This document shows positions 41,862 through 64,000 of a DNA stretch of 64,000 bases, one piece after another. Made by a program: the position numbers and the translations under genes. The notes under the pieces are model-generated. The model ran no database searches. It saw nothing but the letters and a program-made list of their open reading frames with translations, and had not been told where the DNA came from. Source of the stretch: Basidiobolus meristosporus CBS 931.73 (lineage: Eukaryota; Fungi; Basidiobolomycota); contig MCFE01000126.1 of the NCBI GenBank assembly GCA_002104905.1, positions 1-64,000 on the forward strand, in the 5' to 3' direction. Within the stretch, counting starts at the first letter, position 1, and each line of letters opens with the position of its first letter.

Positions 41862-42296
41862 TCCCTTGCACCACCCAAATAGATAATCACCCCCTGACCT
41901 TGCTCCGGAAAGCAGGATCTTTCACTTGGCGTCGACCATCCATTACTGTATGGTGATCATTTGACATGGTTCCTTAGAAATCCAATTAAAATCCTTCATC
42001 AGCCATACATATTTCTTTCTCTGCAACCGCACGTGTACGAGTGGTCTAGTGCAGTGAATTGTGGTAGTCTGTGCTTCCTCGTGAGCATCCATTTCCTTCC
42101 CCTGTGTATGAACAACCGAGAATCCTTTGGTTCGAGGGGGCCAGCGTTTTACCTACGACATATGTTACGGACGGGTCACTAGCCACGTATCTGAGAACGA
42201 AAACACTGGAGTGATTTCTTCATTCGGCATGGATTGTGTGACTTTCTTGATGTTCCTGATACAATTACGTGCGGCTCTCAAGACCATGAAAAAATT

Positions 42297-42369
42297 CGAC
42301 CTAACCAGGGGTCGAACCTGGGACCTTCCGCTTAGGAGGCGGACGCTCTATCCACTGAGCTACAAGGCC
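42297..42369 (-). tRNA. tRNA-Arg(CCT)
   Basis: Reverse complement GGCCTTGTAGCTCAGTGGATAGAGCGTCCGC-CTCCTAA-GCGGAAGGTCCCAGGTTCGACCCCTGGTTAGGTCG folds into a cloverleaf with one acceptor mismatch. Followed by a T6 terminator. Confidence 0.92.
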
Positions 42370-42479
42370 AATCTGTTTTTTATTACTGAGTAAGGAGTTG
42401 ATGGCAATTGGTATTAACGTATACAAAGACGACTCAGTAGCCCAGGAAAAGTAAAAAGAGACAAATCACCATACTTGAA

Positions 42480-43790: not shown

Positions 43791-44605
43791 TGCTCTAACT
43801 TGCGCTCCCCTATTGCATAGAGCAAAGCATGTCACAATGACAATGGGAATCATTGTTACACATGTGTCTTAAGTACCATTTATCAGTATCAACGATTACC
43901 AAACAAGTCACAATATGTGATATTAGTTGACAATATCGTGATCTTTGACAGTTCGAAAAATCAAGTGCTAGCATGTAGCTTCATGTGACACCACCATACC
44001 CAACAACTTCAAATATAACTGAAGAATGATTTGAATATTTACTCGGAACAGTAATTGACGAACTTCGTCCATTAGATAATTGTTGTTTATGAGAAATTAG
44101 GTTAGACAATGATGGATATCAACTACTGATAATATTGATTTGTGTATGTCATTTTCTTATCACGATAGTGAAACATGATGTAAACATATTCTCTTAATTA
44201 CACTCCTGCTCGTATCTATTTCCGCACCAAAGGGCCCCATTGAACCTGGCAAAAAAAGGATATTTTGGCAATTACTGACCGATTACAGGTTTAATTCGGG
44301 TCATAACACAATGCGAATACTCACTCTTGTTGTGAGACCCGGGCTCTTGATTTCAAGCCTGGGTCTGTAAGCCACTTTGCGCAACATTGGTTTGAAATAG
44401 AACTACATATCCAAACTTTGTCCAGTCGAATCCTTTCATAGATGACAACAATGGTCCACCCCAACTCCAACGCTTGGCGTGGTATCAGTACAGCTATGAA
44501 TGAGCCATTATGAGGAACGGCTCAAATCAAATTAGATCTAACATAACCCTAGCAGTTGCTTATGCTTGCGTTACAATAAAACCAATAGCTTCGGCAAAAC
44601 GAAAA

Positions 44606-44678
44606 CGAGGCGCATGGGACTCGAACCCACAATCCCCAGATCCGAAGTCTGATGCCTTATCCATTAGGCCAACGCCCC
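44606..44678 (-). tRNA. tRNA-Arg(TCG)
   Basis: Reverse complement GGGGCGTTGGCCTAATGGATAAGGCATCAGA-CTTCGGA-TCTGGGGATTGTGGGTTCGAGTCCCATGCGCCTCG, followed by TTTT. Confidence 0.93.
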
Positions 44679-44892
44679 ACTCGTTGTTCTTGTCCAAACT
44701 ATGCTTTACTACAGGTAATTACTTAATGATATCACACACTTCAAATATTTTTGTGATTTAATGCACAAAGGTGGTCGCTCATAATTACCAAACTGTTTAA
44801 TCCAATTTCAGACAAGTATACAATAAAAATAGAAGTCTCAACCAATTACAGTCATGGTGATTGACAATGAAGACATGAAATCTACGGAGCCT

Positions 44893-53523: not shown

Positions 53524-54879
53524 ATGAGGGATGTAAGATCCGTGGTCGTCTATATCGTGATAGCAGTGTGGTCCCTACAGTCGCTGGTCACCTCAGCGCT
53601 ATATTGGCATCGACGCGAAAAAGATTGTATTAAATATCGTTCGCCCGGATTCACTGTAATCGCCGCCCTAACAGCGTACATCTTGGTTTGTATAACCGTT
53701 CTCCCTTGGGCGGAGGATGGCTTAATACCATGCTTCATTCGCCTCTGGATCGCAAGTTTGGCCTATCCGGTCATGTATTTATCAGCCACGGCACGCGCGC
53801 TTCGACTACTGTGCTTTTACCGGATCAGCGAAGCCAAGCTGGCTACTCAGACCTCCAGCTCAATCTCTAGTAGAAACTCCCAAACAATCACCATCACCCA
53901 CGTAACGAAAAAGCCCTCTAGCCAGCTCTCGGTCATCGAATCCCCCAATCCCCTGTATCACGAAACGCTGGCCAACAACTGGTACTATCAGAATCGCCGG
54001 CTGTTCTCCGTGACCTTCTTCGCTCAAATCTGCTGTGCCATTGTATTTATTCATATTGTAGTTTTAATCATTATTCAGTACTATACGAGAAAGTTCTCCA
54101 TCAAGCCGACAGTTGCCAAGGACAACTGCTCCGTAGGCTGGGAATGGCTCCCACACAGGCTTTACATAGTGGTGTACGCAGTGGCGGTCAGCCCGTTCAT
54201 ACTGCTGAAGCTCCGGGGAATCCATGACGCCTATGGGATTCGGGAGGAGTTGATAGCACTGACCATCACCAACAGTGTCTTTGATCTGGTGTTTCTGATT
54301 CTATTCGCACTGAACGCATTTGGTGGGCTCAATCCGGATTTTTACGGGCTGCTCTTGGTGATAGTCCCCATCTCGCTGATTCACTGTTTTCTCATCATTC
54401 GACCGCTCTGCGAATCCTATGGGATCTACTTCACCCGGCTTGCAGTGAAACGAAACCGGCTGCATAAGAACCTCCAGTTCACTCCGGAGTGCTTCGAAAG
54501 GATTCTTCAGGACCCGGTGCTGATGGAGCAGTTCAAGTCGTTTGCCGCCAAGGACTTCACGGTGGAGAACGTTCTTTTCTTCGAGCGCTGCCAGGCGATC
54601 TCTCGGAGGAGGGAGTCGGACCCGGCGTGGACGCAGCAGCAGCTCCGCGAGACCTATACCATCTTTATCGAGCCCGATGCCGAGCTGATGGTCAACCTGG
54701 ATGCGGAGACCTTCTTGAGAATCCGGACGGACGTTAGCCTGGAGAAATTCCAACCTGACATGTACACCCAGGCCCAGGCCGAGATCAAAGAGCTGATGTT
54801 TCACAACACGTTCCCAAGATTCCTCGAGTCTGTCAAGTACAACAATTCTCATTGGGTGACCGATTCGTGCATGGCATAA
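53524..54879 (+). CDS. 7TM-RGS protein (seven transmembrane helices plus C-terminal RGS domain)
   Basis: About seven hydrophobic segments, then FERILQDP..FKSFAAKDFTVENVLFF..YTIFIEPDAELMVNLD..NTFPRF, the RGS-box pattern. Confidence 0.88.
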   Translation: MRDVRSVVVYIVIAVWSLQSLVTSALYWHRREKDCIKYRSPGFTVIAALTAYILVCITVLPWAEDGLIPCFIRLWIASLAYPVMYLSATARALRLLCFYRISEAKLATQTSSSISSRNSQTITITHVTKKPSSQLSVIESPNPLYHETLANNWYYQNRRLFSVTFFAQICCAIVFIHIVVLIIIQYYTRKFSIKPTVAKDNCSVGWEWLPHRLYIVVYAVAVSPFILLKLRGIHDAYGIREELIALTITNSVFDLVFLILFALNAFGGLNPDFYGLLLVIVPISLIHCFLIIRPLCESYGIYFTRLAVKRNRLHKNLQFTPECFERILQDPVLMEQFKSFAAKDFTVENVLFFERCQAISRRRESDPAWTQQQLRETYTIFIEPDAELMVNLDAETFLRIRTDVSLEKFQPDMYTQAQAEIKELMFHNTFPRFLESVKYNNSHWVTDSCMA

Positions 54880-55208
54880 TCTATGCGCCTACCATAGAAT
54901 TCTCTAATACCATGTCCCCACTGCCACTCCCACTGCCACTGCCACTGCCATTAGACCCATCCCGCCATTTACCATTTTACCATTCGGCCATTTTGTTCCC
55001 CTGTCCCTAGACCTCCGTAGCCAAAAGAATAAACCCGCCAACAGGAATGCCCACATAGCGTCGGGTGAAACTTCCTGCATCCCTCCAGCTCAGCGTCCCG
55101 GTGCACATGTTTTGCTGGTCAACACGGGCTCATCCACCAGCACCAATCAGATCCACTTGGCCAATAAATCCCATTGAAATCCATTTTTCGCTTCATGTGC
55201 GATGCAGA

Positions 55209-56686
55209 ATGTCTTGGCGGTTTTATCACACCGAGATCAGCCAGATATTGTGTTCTGGCCTAGGGCTGGTCGAGGCGCAGGTGGTGGAGCTTTTGGAGCT
55301 GACCAAGCTGCGAGACGTCCCCCGCTACGGGGAGTTGCAGTGCTCGGTGGACAGGTTGCTGCGCGTCGCTAAGTTGCCGAGGGAGGAGTTGCTCACTCAG
55401 CTTGAGGATATGGTAATTCCACTACGGAGGTCCTGTTCTCTTCTTTCGATCCCCGCCCCCATGCTTACCTTATCTCCTTAAAAACAGTTCCAGGATAGCC
55501 ACTACGAGATGGTGAAAAGCGCCAGGTTGATCTCGTTCCGGATCCACCGAGAAGCCCTGATCTCCAGCACCCTCGGCGGGTTTCTCACCGACAGTGCTTC
55601 CTTCTACCAGGTGAAAGGGGCTGTTCCGCAACGGGTTGGCCTATGGAACAGTGACCCCGACCATTGGCGAGGGGAAGCTTTGGAAACGTTCGTTCGGGCG
55701 ATCCACGAACATTTAGGGTTTCAAGTGCAGCCCATAGCCCGGGTTCTTGGAGAGGTCGAGGGCGAACTGGCCGAACGTCTCGATCTCGAGGAGGAGAAGC
55801 TGCGAGTGAATGGACAGCCTACCAGACTCGGCCGCGAGCTGGCTGCGTTTCGTGCTCAGCTGGGAAAAGTGGACAAGATCCTCTACGTCGGAGAAGACCA
55901 TTTGAAACAGCACGTGTACCAACTGGGCCAACTGATGAACCGACTTGGGGAGGAGGCGCCCGACATCCAACACGTCCCCTACGGCCCGCTCACCAAGCCA
56001 GCGCTGGAGAAAGAGGCGATCCTCGCGAGCGGTCGTTTGGGGATGCAGGCGTTGATGAAGGAGAGTGAAAACCGATACGCCGATCTGATGGATACCTCGG
56101 TGAAGGTCGACGATACTCGGGAGATCAGTCTGTTGGAGTGGATTAGCGAAGTGCTCGCCGAGACGAACTGGCTGGTTCAGCTGCTGCAGCTACGTCGACA
56201 AAAGCCCTGTAAATTCGACGCCGCCCGGATGTTGGATGCAAAAGGGCATTCCGGTGTCTACCTCCAATACACCCATGCCCGTATCTCTGGGTAGGTGGCT
56301 GTCTGAACTCACGATCCTATCCAACCCACCCATCTGTTCTAACCATCTCCAACTTTTCACTTAGTGTCGAACGCAAGTCCGACATCCATCTGAACCGGGG
56401 ATGCTCCCTCGACTGCCTGGTGGAGCCGGAGGCCCGTCAGTTGACCTGGCTTTTGGCAACCTTCTCGTGGCACGTGGAGCAGAGTTACACCACTCTTGAG
56501 CCCTGCCTTCTGATCCATTACCTGTTCTTGGTGGGGATCGCGGTCTCGAACGGACTCTCCGCGCTACGGGTCAAGAACATCGACCCCACCAAGGCCGAGC
56601 CTCGATGGGTGCTCTTCTGGTGCGCGCGGGAGGTGCTGCGCAAGGGATTCCAGTTGATCGGGATCCAAGGATTGGACAAAATGTGA
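55209..56686 (+). CDS. Arginyl-tRNA-synthetase-like protein with intact DALR anticodon-binding domain but degenerate catalytic core, 442 aa; exons 55209-55412, 55488-56290, 56365-56686
   Basis: GTAATT..CAG (75 nt) and GTAGGT..TAG (74 nt) introns join three ORFs in frame. GVYLQYTHARISG and LEPCLLIHYLF...R...L..G..LIG....DKM* match the ArgRS C terminus. No HIGH or KMSK-like motif visible. Confidence 0.8.
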
Positions 56687-59600
56687 GCCTCGCCGGTCCT
56701 CGCGGTCACCGCTTCTCCTTCACCCCTCTCCTCCTGTGGTTGCGGTACACCCATCCACCTACCATGTATACCTCCATCGCCTGCCCTCCCTACCCGACTA
56801 GATATGGGCATCGAACCCACCATCAATTAAATCACGGTCATCAGACCACAACCATTCCCATTCCCATTCTCTTGCTCCCAGTGGTAGTGGCTATCAGCTC
56901 CACATCGAATACAACTGCTGCCCTGTGTCTTGACGTCGCGGCATCGTGGTGCCAGGGGTAATCTTCCACCGCGAGAGCAGCCGGTCTTGGTAGTTGACCC
57001 GAATCGTTTGGGTTGGGTTGTTGCGGTGGTTCCTCAGAGATATGGATACCCTGAGCGGGAGGGGCAGAAGGTGAGAAGCCGGGGTTGTCCAGGAGCCAAC
57101 CGCTATCCCGGGATTCTCCATCGAGGTCCATTTGGGGACTTGAAAGAAACTAGAGCTACCTTTCGGGGGTCCGAGTCCTGCCCACATCGTTGCCACCTGC
57201 AGTGGCCAACGTGACTTCCCGCCTGCAGACCCGCCGGATTCCGGTCATGAACCCGGTATGGATAGGCCTGGTAGGTCGGACAATGGGTTCCAAAGGCCGA
57301 ATTAGGCTCCAGGCCTATTTGGAGATCATGTCAATCCCAAGAAATCCCCACAAGGCGATGGTTCCCGCATCCATCACGGCAGTAGGTCGGTAACGAAGCG
57401 TCTACTCCCTCCCCCAACAAAATCATGTTTCTTGTGGACTGGAGCAGTCGGATCCAGAACTGCGAGGGCCAAGCCCAGGATCTCTGGAATGCCGGTGGTG
57501 GACGTATCCTTTCCCCACTCTGGATCAGCCACCACAAAATGCTACTAACAGCCATCTTGTGCTCCGCTCCGGTACTCGGAAATCCTCAGCTTTCTGGTAA
57601 ATCCATGGTTCTAACGAAGTGTAAAATCAGGGGCGGGGTTAATGTCTGACCAATGAAGCGAGGGTATAGTCTAGTCATACATGCCATTCGATGCGAGATT
57701 GTCGTTTTCAACTCTACCTACAACGGCTTGAAGGAGCTTTAAAGGCTAGGTAGATGGAATCTTCATCGCAGACCAGTTAATCAGCTAATTCCGACCAACA
57801 GATGTTTTTATCGCCATTTAGTTGCATCTGCCGTATTGGGAGATGCCGGAATGAACCAGCCATTTGGGCCGATTTGTTTGGAATGGTCAGATGATATCTT
57901 CGAGTGTGTGGTTAAATTAAATGAATGGTAATCTCCCCCAGTATCTGCTGGCACAATTTGCATTCCATTGTGGTCAATGGATTGGGTTGGACAGGTCATA
58001 TAGCCTTGCTTCTTGAAGTGTACACCAGGCCTGTATTTGCACAGTAAGGTTGCGAAGTGATCCCCACCAATCTAGACACACTCAGTAAGTAGTCAAACCC
58101 AGGCTTGTGTGGCAGGCTCTAGTCAACACTCCCTTTACTGAATAGTCTACCAAATGGCCCAATTTTAGGTCACCACCTTAATACTGACATGTACAGCCAT
58201 GGCCTGCTGTGTTGATGCTGAGCAAGGTGACCAAGGTATGATCATCTGCCCAGGCCAAGTAGCGCTTAATACATCATGTAACATGGCATTATGCTGGGTC
58301 ATACTGGTGAAAGGCTATCCTGTTTTGTCAGTGATAAAATTGTTTCATGTTCAGATTCACAAGCAGTGGCATGGAGTCGTCTATAGCTATCAAATAACTT
58401 CAGATATCAAGATGCACTTTACAGTGGGTGAATATCATGACCGTTATATCTAGGCAAGCCTCCATTGCAGTGTAGCATTTAAAGATAATGGAAATGATAG
58501 AACAAACCAGTGAGTTATTTGGCCTTTGCTAGATTGTTACAGATTCTATATTTACACCTCAGTACTCCATCACCTTTGCCACATAGATCATAGCTTAGAG
58601 ACCTTACTGTTTCCTGCCCATATATCTTGCTTTGATTTGCCTAGAATACTCTCACAAGATTGATATGTGCCCTGCATAAGTGAATTTGAATTACTGCCCA
58701 AGAGCTTCCAATCTTAATACACATGTTGATTGTGCTGCAATTATTAAGCTGTCACCTAAATTTTCATGCTAACTTGGTCACATATATCTTATTCTGTAAT
58801 CAGCATTCTTATCTTGATTTATTTAGAGTATTTTCACCAATTTATCAGGCACCCAGATTATGACCATTCTCAGAATTGTCTAAAAGACCCCGAGCCTTGT
58901 GCACATACTCTCAGAACCTTCCTGAGCAAACTCTACATGTCCTTTGCCTTAAATCATTGCAAGTTTACACACCATAATACTGATCAATATATCTACAAGT
59001 GAATAACATGTTAATCCTCTAGTTCTCCACATTGCTCCAATAGTCCTTGGAAGATTGCAACAGGTTATTAGCCCCAGGCTTGCTGTCCTCTTGGTGTCTA
59101 CTTTGCTTTTGATTTACTTCTGCTAGTCTGGAGAAAGACTTTCCACACTATTGTTCTGCATAATGTTAAAGATGACTACTGCTGCTAAAGGACTATGTTT
59201 ATGAGGATATAGCTATGGAGAAGAAGACATTGCCTTCAAAAGGTGCTCTTGGTAGCTACTCAAATTAGTTATGAAGATGAGTCTAGCAAACTGGCATCTG
59301 AACATGTCAAGAAAAGTAGAATGTTGGTGCTCTACCACTACTGAGGAAGATTGTGTATTTCAGCAATTGAGGGTCCAGATCTTTTATGAAATATATTGAT
59401 ATGTGCATTTATATGGCCCAAGTTGACTGCTAAACACGCTTTTTGGATAGGATATTATTCTGAATTGCAAAAAATAGATCACTCTTGAATTATTAAGGGA
59501 GGAGGATTTTACCAAAATCTGTTGCCATACAACATTAGGTTGAGAATACAAATACTGGAGTTATCAACTACTATTCTGGACTACCCACTGATGGAAGAAG

Positions 59601-61515
59601 ATCTAAGAGACAAGCTCCCTGAATTGTAAGGATCCTGATAATATGTAATACTTATTTATTCACAAGGAGTATATAAATATATTGCATGGTTGATTGGAAG
59701 AATGCTATAATTGTAGCAAGTGTTTGGACACTGAAACCAGTATACAAGGAGCTAAAAGTGCAGCTGCAGGACATACTACCATTGTGTTCAAGTCCAAAAA
59801 CAATTGGAGAAGGTATTATACAAATTTAGCAAAATCAACATAAGAAAATTCTACCACCAGCCAAAAAAAGGAAGGAAAGTGATTGCAAGTCTGATTGGAG
59901 TATATAACCTAGCAAGAGCTGACCAGCATAAAAAAAGAGCCACCCAGAAGATAACATTGTATTCTATACTTGTTATATGTACATCACTTACAACAGTGGG
60001 AAAACACACTTGGTGGTATTCAATATCATGGGTCACATCTGAAGAATTGTGACTGGTCAAGTCATGGCCAAGCTCTGCTGCTCAAAATGCTGATATATTG
60101 GAGTCTGATGCCAAAGTACTGATGAAGTTAGCTTTCAAATGCAGTGAATTTGATCAAATTTGGTCAACTCTATCAATGGTGATGGCTGATATAAGTGAAT
60201 GCCAATTTTCATTACCACATGAAAAGTAATGATGATCATCCTGTCAAAAGGCAATAACAAAATTTAAATCTTGCAACAAAGAGGTATTGATCCAGCCAGG
60301 ACACCATGCAAAGGCTATCAAAATTGTACCCCAGATTTCACAAAAACATATCAAGATTTTTCATCACAACAAACATAATTAGCTTTTAATTGGTTCTCTG
60401 CCAATCCTCTCACTTTCATATCCCAGACAATTATTCACCTCCTGCATCTGTATAAATAGATTGACTGTTGCCTCCATTTACCACTCCTTACTTCCTGACT
60501 CAACCAATGCTCTTACTTTTATTGCATACAAATTGATTTATTTCCTTTCAATCTTCAGTTATAATGTGTTTACCAGTGGTACTGACCTATAAAAGTACCT
60601 ATACTCAGCACTAACATTAAGCCTAACCCTACACACAGCAAGTAACTCCATAAAAATTTACCACTCAGTAAGTATTTCTGCTGTAGGCCCTTTTTCCATG
60701 ATTATGGCAGGAACTCTATAGCCTCATGTCATTGTTCATTCACTGGCTCCCATATTTCCTGGTCTTTGGCTACTACTGCAAGGTCTAACACTTTATATGC
60801 CAGCCTTTGCAATAGATACTTGCAATAATCAAGTACATTTTCTTGAGCACTGTTCTGAAGAGGTTCTGCAGCCTCTAGGTTTGCCTATTAATGTTCCAAA
60901 ATCCCACTGTAGGCATTGTGATAGTATTTTAAGCTCTGGATGTTTTTGCTTTGTCTGTCAGTGGGATCTCCACTCTGTCTACAATGGAGGATATAGAGGC
61001 TGAGGTAGACAAATTAGGTTTCTCTGCATACACATCTACCTCACTGGAGTGTAGCTCAACTGGTTGCAGTTCCAACTCTTGTAAAAACAGCTGTTTTCTT
61101 GTTTGTAATTCTTCTTGGCTATGATGAAATTCCATCTGTTCTGGGCTTATGGTGTCAATTGGCAAGAACGGCAGCTTTTTTCTCATGCTTCCCTGTCTCT
61201 GGCTTGGGTAGACTTTTTCCCCTTTACCTTTTCCTTTATCACTGCCAGGTCTTTCGCTGCTACTTTGTCTGAGTGCTTCTTGTATCCTAAAAAAAATCAG
61301 AAAAGGCCACCATCATAATATCAGCTGAACTGCTAGTAATCTTACTTCAAGTGGGGGATAACATATGCAATAAGGTAAGCAGGTGTGATAGTCAACCAGC
61401 TTATGGGATAGTACTGATCAGGTAAGCCAAATGGGATAAAACTAAAATAAGTGTAGTAGAGAAATAGGGAAGTAGAAAATATGGGAATGAGCACATCTGT
61501 CAGTGGGTGTCACTG

Positions 61516-61712
61516 TCACCCCACTACAGTGCTGGATTTTCTTAATTCTTCATCCAGGAGCCTTCCATACATGAAATTTAAGGTCAAATCTGCAGTTCTG
61601 GACTCTAGGGCTGATACAAGGTCCTGAAACTTGTCTGTCAGGCTATTCAGGATGGTAACTATCATATCCTCATCAGTTGTTGGTACACTCACAGATTCCA
61701 TTTCATCTACCT
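61516..61712 (-). mobile_element. Inverted copia gag fragment
   Basis: MESVSVPTTDEDMIVTILNSLTDKFQDLVSALESRT matches MESVGIPPTDEDEIVTTLNSLTDEFQSLVSAPQSRT at ~62228(+). Confidence 0.8.
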
Positions 61713-64000
61713 AAATCATCAAGTAAAACCACCTAATCTACTTGTACTCCCAATCACTTCCAATATCACCAAGACTCTTACAGGAGACTATGAGCCCCAA
61801 GCTGTCACTCTCTGCAATGTCTGCTACTGCTATTACTGGAGCTTTTCCCTCAGCTGAAAATTTGGATGGATCTAACTATCAAGTGTGGAAGGTGAAGTTG
61901 ATGATGTGACCAAAAGAAAGAGACCTTTGGGATGTTGTCATGAGAGAAGAATGTCCTCCTAAGAATGTGGTAGAGGAAGCATTAAAGTAGCAGAAGAAAG
62001 AACAAAATGCCTTTAACTGCATTTGTCTTCATGTCAAAGACTAATTACTATTTCAATGCTCAAGAGCAAGAACCACAAAGAGGGCCTGGAAGGCATTAGA
62101 AGGCACATACTGGTCATGTACAGCTGTTAAGAAGATGTATCTTAGACAAGAATTCTTTACTACAAATATGCAGTTAGGACAAGAAATGAGAAATCTAATT
62201 GACAGAATTACCCTGCTGGTGGATGAAATGGAATCTGTGGGCATACCACCCACTGATGAGGATGAAATAGTTACCACCCTGAACAGCCTGACAGATGAGT
62301 TTCAGAGCCTTGTATCAGCCCCACAGTCCAGAACTGAAGATTTGACCTTAATTCATGTATAAAGAAGGCTCCTGGATGAAGAATACAGAGAATCCAGCAC
62401 CAATAAGAGGGAAGAAGAAAGTGTTTTATAAGCATTGATAACCAACAAAGGAGGTACTCAAGACCCATCAAAGGCATCAGCAACCTGTTGTACAACTACT
62501 GCAAATGGAAAGGAACACATTAGACTGGTGCTTCAAAAAAAGAGACAATCAGCAAAAGAAGCCTCATGATGGAAATGCTGCACATAAAGAAGTAGACTAT
62601 TCATATCTGCTCCAAATATGGTCACAAACAAGGCTTATCAGATGTGATTCATTGACTCTGGAGTATCTCAACACTTTACACACCAATTGTAATTTTCATC
62701 CAATATCAAGAAATTCCAATTAAGAAGGTTCTCATGGGTGAAAATATAGCACTTGATGCTGCAGGAGAAGGAACTATCCAAGTAAACCCTAGAAGCAGTG
62801 AAGGAAGCCATGTACCTACCATCAAAGAAGTACTCTATGTACCAGAAATGGCAAAGAACCTACTGCCTCTAAGCAAGGCCACTGCTGGAGGACTCAGCTT
62901 CAGCTTTGACAATTCTGGATGCATGATCACTGATTGAAATGGTATCCATATTGCTCTGGGTATCAGAGATCAGAGTCTATACAAGCTGCCTTGTTTTCCA
63001 TCATATCTTCAGTCATATCTGGAAGCCCATATAAGTAGCTTAAATGAAAAAGCACCAATGCTTGGCACAGTAGACTAGGATGCATCAATATTGATGGTTA
63101 ATACCAATTGATCAAAGATTGGCAAATTTTCAGAGTTAAAATTAATCCCTGAAATAAATTGGAGCACTGTAAAGCCTGCATATATGGGAGAAAGCCAGAA
63201 AACTGTCCATGAGCTTGGGGTAAGTCAAAACTAAGAAAGAACTAGATCTAATTCACTCAGATCTGTGTGGAGCTATGCAATAGTTATCCTGAGATGGGAT
63301 GAAGTATGTAAGCATTTTTGTTATGATTATACAAGATATGTGTGGGTCTACTTCATGGACAGAAAGGAAGCAACTTTGTCCCAGCTCAGGAAGCTCAAAG
63401 CCATGGTGGAGAGAGAAACTGGTGAAGAAATCAACAAAATTTGCGCTGATAATGGTGGAGAGTATGTCTCAAAACTCTACATTCACTTCTGCAAAATCTG
63501 TGGGATGAAGTATAAAACTACTATACCTTACTCCCCACAGCAAAATAAACTGGCAGAGCATGCAAACAGTGCAATAATGAATATGGCAAGATCCATGATT
63601 ATTGTTCAAAAATTATCCTATGATTTTTGGGCAAAATCAGTTGCCACAGCTCTATACCTTAAAACTAGGAGTTATCACTGAATAATTTGGGATTCTACTC
63701 CATTTGAAGTATAACATAGATACAGACCAAGTGCAGAACATCCATGAATATTTGGGTGTACAGCATATGCCAAGCAGCCTCCTGGAGATCAGTCAAAGCT
63801 AAGCCACAAAGTGTAAAATGCATGTTTTTGGGCTACTGCAATGAGGGTAGAGAATACAGACTGTACAGCACCAAAGATAAGAAGCTAATCAGGTCCAGGG
63901 GTGTGTTGCTTGATGAAAATTCAAAACCCTCACTCAAAATGATATTAGATGATGACAAAATCTAATCCTAGGTCAAACAATATTCAGAATTGAAACAGAG
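61712..64000 (+). mobile_element. Degenerate Ty1/copia LTR retrotransposon (LTR end, PBS, gag, protease, integrase), truncated by the window end
   Basis: ...CTTACA followed by PBS-like GACTATGAGCCCC. Gag LDGSNYQVWK...LWDVV, Zn knuckle, protease IDSG, WHSRLG, integrase IHSDLCG, DNGGEY, PYSPQQN, FW, and KCMFLGY. Many stops and frameshifts. Confidence 0.9.

Follow-up and report, generated by a model that had tools for sequence, protein, structure and literature searches.

Why would a fungus keep a gene for an arginyl-tRNA synthetase (ArgRS) whose active site is gone? The question is raised by a three-exon gene at positions 55209-56686, plus strand, of a 64,000-nucleotide window (the whole stretch of DNA analysed here, contig MCFE01000126.1) from Basidiobolus meristosporus CBS 931.73, an early-diverging fungus in the phylum Basidiobolomycota. 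An earlier note on this DNA had described the product as a catalytically dead ArgRS paralog rather than a decaying pseudogene, and as a possible fungal analogue of DALRD3, a tRNA-Arg-binding protein of vertebrates. It is now well supported that the protein is a non-catalytic ArgRS paralog (a pseudo-synthetase): the catalytic signatures are lost within one exon, the fold is intact, a second Basidiobolus species has a gapless orthologue at 60% identity, and related degenerate proteins form a clade. The main new result is that the gene belongs to a widespread fungal family whose members are often mis-annotated as active ArgRS. As to the purpose of the protein, the best explanation, and in our judgement a fairly probable one, is that it binds tRNA-Arg for something other than charging it.

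The gene and its lost active site

The exons were read from positions 54600-57300. Their translations are residues 1-68, 69-335 and 337-442 of a hypothetical protein of 442 residues, K493DRAFT_313935 of B. meristosporus CBS 931.73, which was returned by a word-index search with exon 2; the split codon GG/T gives G336. This protein, referred to below as P0001, is identical to the exon translations of the window gene and was used as the whole-protein query. The spliced product of 442 residues, with an intact open reading frame and splice sites, had been read in the same way by the earlier note, and that reading is borne out by the match of all three exons to P0001 and by canonical GT-AG introns. 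The features of the gene are as follows.

55209..55412, plus strand: exon 1, residues 1-68, first part of the ArgRS Add-1-like N-terminal domain, containing YGELQCSV
55413..55487, plus strand: intron 1, 75 nucleotides, GT..AG (GTAATT...ACAG)
55488..56290, plus strand: exon 2, residues 69-336, rest of the N-terminal domain, degenerate shortened Rossmann fold, omega-loop region and start of the DALR domain
55632..55682, plus strand: remnant of the HIGH site, residues 117-133, RVGLWNSDPDHWRGEAL, with DPDH replacing HxGH and a 4-residue deletion
55968..56024, plus strand: site of the lost MSTR/KMSKS loop, residues 229-247, QHVPYGPLTKPALEKEAIL, from alignments to 1bs2 and to a 54-sequence canonical profile
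56193..56290, plus strand: most conserved stretch of the family, residues 304-336, RRQKPCKFDAARMLDAKGHSGVYLQYTHARISG, equivalent to canonical kRikdyeFdweralssegdtGvyLqYthaR
56291..56364, plus strand: intron 2, 74 nucleotides, GT..AG (GTAGGT...TTAG), phase 2
56365..56686, plus strand: exon 3, residues 336-442 and the TGA stop, DALR anticodon-binding domain ending in a C-terminal Met

The catalytic site was compared with a reference set of 54 canonical ArgRS, picked for an intact SSPN..HxGH and all reading SSPNIAKPFHxGH. At the HIGH motif, canonical SSPNIAKPFHxGHLRST becomes WNSDPDHWRGE in P0001, with loss of the first His and of four loop residues; the second His (H127) and the next Arg (R129) remain. 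Residues 117-133 can be assigned to a degenerate HIGH site because phmmer aligns residues 126-151 (DHWRGEALETFVRAIHEHLGFQVQPI) to the HIGH helix of a canonical fungal ArgRS (P0003, residues 160-185) and because the AlphaFold2 model has a beta-strand at 117-122 and a helix at 128-143. The second signature, canonical GMSTRKG, is missing after QHVPYG (residues 229-234): the alignment to yeast ArgRS 1bs2 has a gap at GMSTRKG, and GMSTRKG is likewise absent in the alignment to the canonical profile. Against the same profile, the orthologue of B. ranarum (P0002) also has a deletion at the site of the MSTR loop. Both the replacement of the HIGH signature and the absence of a KMSK-like loop past QHVPYG had been pointed out before, and both hold.

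Losses extend to the arginine-binding residues. Compared with the canonical profile, YLTRD is replaced by RLGRE (in TRLGRE) and SEQ by DHL. The Asn of SSPN, the Tyr and Asp of YxTRD, and the Gln of SEQ are all lost in P0001. Between the N-terminal domain and the second half of the Rossmann fold, about 198 profile columns face 67 residues of P0001, a loss of about 130 residues. When a conserved column is defined as one with the canonical residue in at least 80% of canonical ArgRS, P0001 keeps none of the 44 conserved columns in the first half of the Rossmann fold (family mean 6%), a figure that partly restates the deletion, since the glocal profile alignment treats this half of P0001 as deleted. 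In the second half, 13 of 24 are kept (family mean 19%). The catalytic losses vary in detail between family members, as expected if catalytic constraint is gone.

Could a missed exon restore the HIGH and MSTR motifs? It could not, because all of the lost sites sit within exon 2, whose 268 codons form one uninterrupted frame that is gapless against B. ranarum. This possibility, one of those named as refuting in the earlier note, is thereby removed.

Two further ATG codons lie upstream of the annotated start at 55209. One at 55107 is in frame (55107-55211) and would lengthen the protein by 34 residues, many of them Arg, His, Ser and Pro; the other, at 55202, is out of frame and 7 nucleotides ahead of the start. 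The N-termini of family members align to 55209, which they favour over 55107, and on this ground a mitochondrial presequence starting at ATG 55107 was rejected. The family N-termini, which match the annotated start and carry no presequence, suggest that the protein is cytosolic.

The retained fold and anticodon-binding module

Despite these losses, P0001 is predicted to be a folded and complete miniature ArgRS, composed of an Add-1-like N-terminal domain, a Rossmann fold and a DALR domain. With the family alignment as input, AlphaFold2 gave a model with a mean predicted local distance difference test (pLDDT) of 85.3 and a predicted template modelling score (pTM) of 0.85. The top 20 Foldseek matches of this model in the PDB are all ArgRS, the first being the yeast ArgRS-tRNA complex 1f7u_A (E 1.6e-19, query-normalised template modelling score, TM, 0.83). 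A shape search of the ESM Atlas aligned 418-426 residues of 1-442 to ArgRS clusters with TM 0.83-0.86 and a root-mean-square deviation of about 3 Å. Structure prediction, proposed earlier as a check, therefore returned an ArgRS fold over the whole length of the protein.

Profile searches recover the C-terminal part. In Pfam, DALR_1 (PF05746) alone is significant, at residues 327-442 with E 1.4e-13, in agreement with the DALR domain reported earlier; exon 3 by itself matches DALR_1 with E 1.7e-9, and the precomputed Pfam annotation of P0001 also holds DALR_1/PF05746 only. The Pfam catalytic family tRNA-synt_1d has no match in P0001, and NCBIfam argS (TIGR00456) gives a partial match far under its cut-off. 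The best sequence match in the PDB is yeast ArgRS 1bs2, residues 358-607 of which align to 190-442 of the query (E 5e-19). The ArgRS-like N-terminal domain, also claimed earlier, stood in part. The exon 1 product is modelled by AlphaFold2 as the helices and strands of this domain, and a weak profile match to the canonical N-domain spans YGELQCSV; the Pfam Arg_tRNA_synt_N threshold is not reached in P0001 but is reached in another family member, P0140 of Absidia. The domain is thus real at the level of the predicted fold.

It is the anticodon-binding part that has been kept best. From the omega-loop through the DALR domain, 21 of 28 conserved canonical columns (75%) are retained in P0001, with a family mean of 72%. 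The best-kept stretch runs RRQK..KF..RMLDAKGHSGVYLQYTHAR, after which come the DALR helices and the terminal ..RM; in canonical terms, its portion at residues 304-336 corresponds to the omega-loop and the entry to the anticodon-binding domain. R416, G435 and M442 are invariant across the family. A stop codon directly follows M442, and in a genome of Mortierellaceae a stop likewise stands directly past the terminal Met. Anticodon reading in the yeast ArgRS complex involves the omega-loop and the C-terminal Met. Of the tRNA, C35 and G/U36 are the major anticodon identity elements for arginine and are read by the C-terminal module of ArgRS (PMC4742068). LRVK, which had been considered as a signature specific to the family, was rejected, being present in canonical mitochondrial-type ArgRS too.

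The same gradient of conservation is seen within Basidiobolus. P0002 (K7432_013466) of B. ranarum is 60% identical to P0001 over 375 residues with zero gaps, and identity rises from 49% in the rest of the N-terminal domain and 52% in the Rossmann part to 74% in the DALR part. Unconstrained sequence at 60% identity would be expected to show stops as well as insertions and deletions. P0002 begins at the Met encoded by the final codon of exon 1 in B. meristosporus; it is probably the annotation, and not the gene, that lacks the 67 N-terminal residues.

A family of fungal pseudo-synthetases

Searched exhaustively with HMMER, 1.84 billion representatives yielded 965 matches. Among the best 150, the nearest outside Basidiobolus come from early-diverging fungi and animals and are canonical ArgRS of the mitochondrial type, such as those of Choanephora, Bifiguratus and Neoconidiobolus and the RARS2 of starfish and spider. 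Interspersed among them are proteins that have DALR_1, in which tRNA-synt_1d is absent or marginal and the HIGH column is degenerate. Members of this pseudo-ArgRS family are found in the following fungi.

Calcarisporiella thermophila, Conidiobolus and Absidia cylindrospora
Chytrids: Polychytrium, Zopfochytrium, Powellomyces and Blyttiomyces
Mortierellomycotina, nine clusters: Mortierella, Podila, Entomortierella, Actinomortierella and Gryganskiella

No member from Dikarya is among the best 150 of the 965 matches, which is not proof of absence. GenBank lists many of the family members under the name "Arginyl-tRNA synthetase". In Mortierella alpina a degenerate copy (P0037) occurs alongside a canonical one (P0047, with HGGH), and therefore the two forms coexist as paralogs. 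In the literature that was searched, no fungal pseudo-ArgRS is described.

A maximum likelihood tree (LG+C20 PMSF, last 300 residues, 49 rows, bacterial outgroup) places 16 degenerate fungal proteins in one clade, with ultrafast bootstrap (UFBoot) 96 and SH-aLRT 93. Basidiobolus falls inside a 10-row subclade supported at 100/97. In the best tree, the pseudo-ArgRS clade is sister to the clade of canonical fungal ArgRS (95/64). A separate animal clade (97/99) holds three of the four named RARS2 rows together with six unnamed rows, and the RARS2 of Trichoplax lies elsewhere. The motifs ARWLLFW and LCGIERKS are common to the pseudo-ArgRS family and fungal canonical ArgRS and are not found in animal RARS2. 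An alternative tree, in which the canonical fungal and animal enzymes are grouped and the pseudo-ArgRS family lies outside, was not rejected by the approximately unbiased (AU) test (difference in log-likelihood 2.6, p 0.39), and the origin of the family could lie at the fungal stem or earlier. The family is an old one, shared by Basidiobolus, Conidiobolus, Calcarisporiella, chytrids, Mucorales and Mortierellomycotina and so spread across several early-diverging fungal phyla, and had gone unnoticed in the earlier note.

Compared with canonical fungal and mitochondrial-type ArgRS (1bs2/1f7u and the enzymes of Choanephora, Bifiguratus, Neoconidiobolus and M. alpina), P0001 has the same three-domain fold (TM 0.83), about 33% identity over the C-terminal 270 residues, and the shared elements GxSGVYLQYTHAR, LRVK, ARWLLFW and terminal Met. 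Unlike them, it has no HIGH, no MSTR and no arginine-binding residues, about 130 catalytic residues are gone, and there is no tRNA-synt_1d match.

Two candidates with unusual architectures did not hold. P0055 (1595 residues) had the appearance of a fusion of pseudo-ArgRS with a SNF2/RING helicase of the Rad5/Rad16 type. At its locus (L001:3001-9363; Mortierellaceae, GCA_015680635.1, contig JAABOA010000021.1) a stop codon comes immediately behind the terminal Met of the pseudo-ArgRS (...AKEM*), and for this reason the fusion is a gene-model artefact. P0132 (411 residues), taken at first as a DALR-only protein, pairs with P0140 of Absidia and seems to be a protein of that kind with a shortened gene model.

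The HIGH motif is also spoiled (FDTCN; LDMGSF) in other ArgRS copies, namely P0069 of Pelomyxa schiedti (637 residues) and P0109/P0198 from Logan assemblies, of which P0109 is arthropod-like. P0069 and P0109 resemble the pseudo-ArgRS clade in the spoiled HIGH but differ from it in that Pfam recognises their catalytic domain, which is of full length. Their branches fall outside the fungal clade, that of P0069 in two trees and that of P0109 in one of these only. Loss of the ArgRS active site seems to have happened several times.

Proposed function and its alternatives

In the best explanation, selection has retained what in a working ArgRS grips the anticodon stem-loop of tRNA-Arg (omega-loop, DALR helices and C-terminal Met), while every class of residue for activation of arginine and ATP has been lost. 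The protein is predicted to bind tRNA-Arg, all or some of the isoacceptors, without charging it, as expected from the analogy with DALRD3, and would present the bound tRNA to another enzyme, serving as its specificity adaptor or subunit or as a chaperone, in the manner of DALRD3 for METTL2 in vertebrates. Gene structure, fold, catalytic loss, the kept anticodon-binding motifs and a monophyletic family are results of the analysis; tRNA-Arg binding is an inference, and the partner enzyme and the tRNA modification are speculative.

A version of this proposal in which the partner is a Trm140-type enzyme and the modification is 3-methylcytidine at position 32 (m3C32) is attractive, because METTL2A alone is unable to modify tRNA-Arg, which has C35 and not G35 (PMC8373065), and because m3C enzymes have repeatedly borrowed synthetases or synthetase relics as tRNA readers (PMC11479938; PMC10275265). 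A link of the fungal pseudo-ArgRS to a methyltransferase is speculative, and nothing in this analysis connects the two.

Several points weigh against tRNA-Arg binding without charging as the role of the protein. A canonical ArgRS of B. meristosporus was not returned by word-index searches with exon 2, the family alignment or residues 176-442, which gave only the two Basidiobolus proteins and bacterial ArgRS. Coexistence with a canonical ArgRS is seen in M. alpina only. The family evolves fast, as its long branches indicate, and some members may have shifted role. The gene model and the action of selection are read from sequence, and the tRNA-contact residues were judged by conservation of canonical columns.

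The comparison with DALRD3 bears on the first alternative. DALRD3 is a DALR-domain protein without synthetase motifs that binds METTL2A/B and tRNA-Arg(CCU/UCU) and is required for m3C32 in the latter (Lentini et al. 2020, PMC7237682). Like P0001, it descends from ArgRS, ends in a DALR domain and has no synthetase catalytic motifs. P0001 differs in being fungal and about 100 residues shorter, and its sequence is more like canonical ArgRS, both mitochondrial-type and fungal, than like any of the DALRD3-like proteins seen. P0001 could nevertheless be a true DALRD3 orthologue, derived from a pseudo-ArgRS of the opisthokont ancestor that was lost in Dikarya and guides a Trm140/METTL2-type enzyme to m3C32 on tRNA-Arg(CCU/UCU). 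We consider this unlikely. The architecture is identical to that of DALRD3, and by language-model features the nearest large clusters in the ESM Atlas are chordate DALRD3 (DALR_N plus DALR_1) and arthropod DALR-only proteins, with scores of 0.93/0.92 for the whole protein and 0.88/0.87 for residues 1-310; scores under 0.9 are leads only, and the neighbours with DALR_N (PF26758), at 0.88-0.93, were counted as a lead only. An Atlas structure from the DALRD3 cluster matches residues 1-310 with TM 0.72, but canonical ArgRS does better over the same residues (0.77-0.79). The AU test (p 0.39) leaves room for an origin before the split of fungi and animals, whereas in the best tree the family adjoins canonical fungal ArgRS (95/64), with animal RARS2 elsewhere, and ARWLLFW and LCGIERKS are common to the family and the fungal enzymes. 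Among the best 150 HMMER matches of at least 380 residues (P0055 not screened), none looked like an animal DALRD3, although canonical RARS2 is present there at E 1e-29, and precomputed Pfam gives only DALR_1 for P0001. Of DALRD3 itself, no chain is detectable in the PDB by sequence or profile, and the word-index searches returned no sequence. In favour of orthology, the window has a tRNA-Arg(CCU) gene with the substrate features C32, U36 and A37; against it, m3C in tRNA-Arg is reported from mammals and not from yeast or plants, and no homologues of DALRD3 were known outside vertebrates (PMC7237682).

What remains of the proposed DALRD3 analogy is therefore a likeness of architecture, a degenerate ArgRS body joined to a DALR domain, together with the nearness of chordate DALRD3 clusters by features. 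The best tree, in which DALRD3 is not included, mildly favours an independent fungal origin by its placement of the family next to the canonical fungal enzymes, and convergence with DALRD3 is taken as the default.

A second alternative is a non-tRNA or regulatory role, for example that of a "prozyme"-like partner or inhibitor of the canonical ArgRS, or of a carrier of Arg-tRNA to an arginyl-transferase. Other enzyme families do have dead paralogs that regulate the active copy (e.g. PMC5201418), and the whole ArgRS body has been kept and not the DALR domain alone, which suggests a need beyond anticodon binding. However, the strongest conservation falls exactly on the anticodon-binding module, and there is no evidence of a partner. 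Canonical ArgRS is moreover monomeric, which counts against a partner role, and we regard an explanation of this kind as rather improbable.

A still-active ArgRS with unorthodox motifs would account for the whole-length fold and for the retention of H127 and R129, but it is very hard to reconcile with the loss of the first His of HIGH, the Asn of SSPN, the Tyr and Asp of YxTRD, the Gln of SEQ, the MSTR loop and about 130 further residues, or with losses that vary among members in a way that fits absent catalytic constraint. A decaying pseudogene or an artefact of gene prediction, which the absence of any listed RNA run and the out-of-frame ATG 7 nucleotides upstream of the start might suggest, is scarcely credible in view of the intact 442-codon frame, the canonical GT-AG introns, the confident compact fold, the gapless orthologue at 60% identity and a clade across several fungal phyla.

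The surroundings of the gene in the window include the following features.

42296-42370, minus strand: tRNA-Arg (CCT), anticodon loop CUCCUAA, with C32, U36 and A37
44605-44679, minus strand: tRNA-Arg (TCG), with C32
53524-54879, plus strand: upstream neighbour, a single open reading frame of 451 residues, N-terminally seven-transmembrane-like (weak 7tm_3) and C-terminally an RGS domain (E 9e-17)

C32, present in both tRNA-Arg genes, is not discriminating, and their position 11-13 kb upstream of the pseudo-ArgRS gene is probably chance. As read, the acceptor stem of tRNA-Arg(CCU) has one U-U mismatch and two G-U pairs. By its domains, the upstream neighbour is a regulator of G-protein signalling of the 7TM-RGS type. 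GC content falls from about 0.57 over the gene to 0.36-0.41 in 58000-64000, where there is one open reading frame of at least 100 residues; this region is AT-rich and apparently gene-poor or repeat-rich.

Pseudo-synthetases that retain tRNA recognition are rare. DALRD3, the product of a human disease gene and described as vertebrate-specific, is the one well-studied case derived from ArgRS. A fungal counterpart, probably of independent origin, would make the retirement of the active site with retention of the anticodon reader a recurrent route to tRNA-specific adaptors. If P0001 were instead a DALRD3 orthologue, DALRD3 would not be a vertebrate invention, and loss in Dikarya would explain why yeast genetics missed the system. 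For the databases, there is the problem that many members of the family are labelled "Arginyl-tRNA synthetase" though, by their residues, they should be unable to act as one. In M. alpina a dead copy occurs together with a live one, which makes this fungus a candidate for the adaptor question. For the biology of early-diverging fungi, the proposed role predicts an isoacceptor-specific process acting on tRNA-Arg, possibly m3C32, that would be missing from yeast models.

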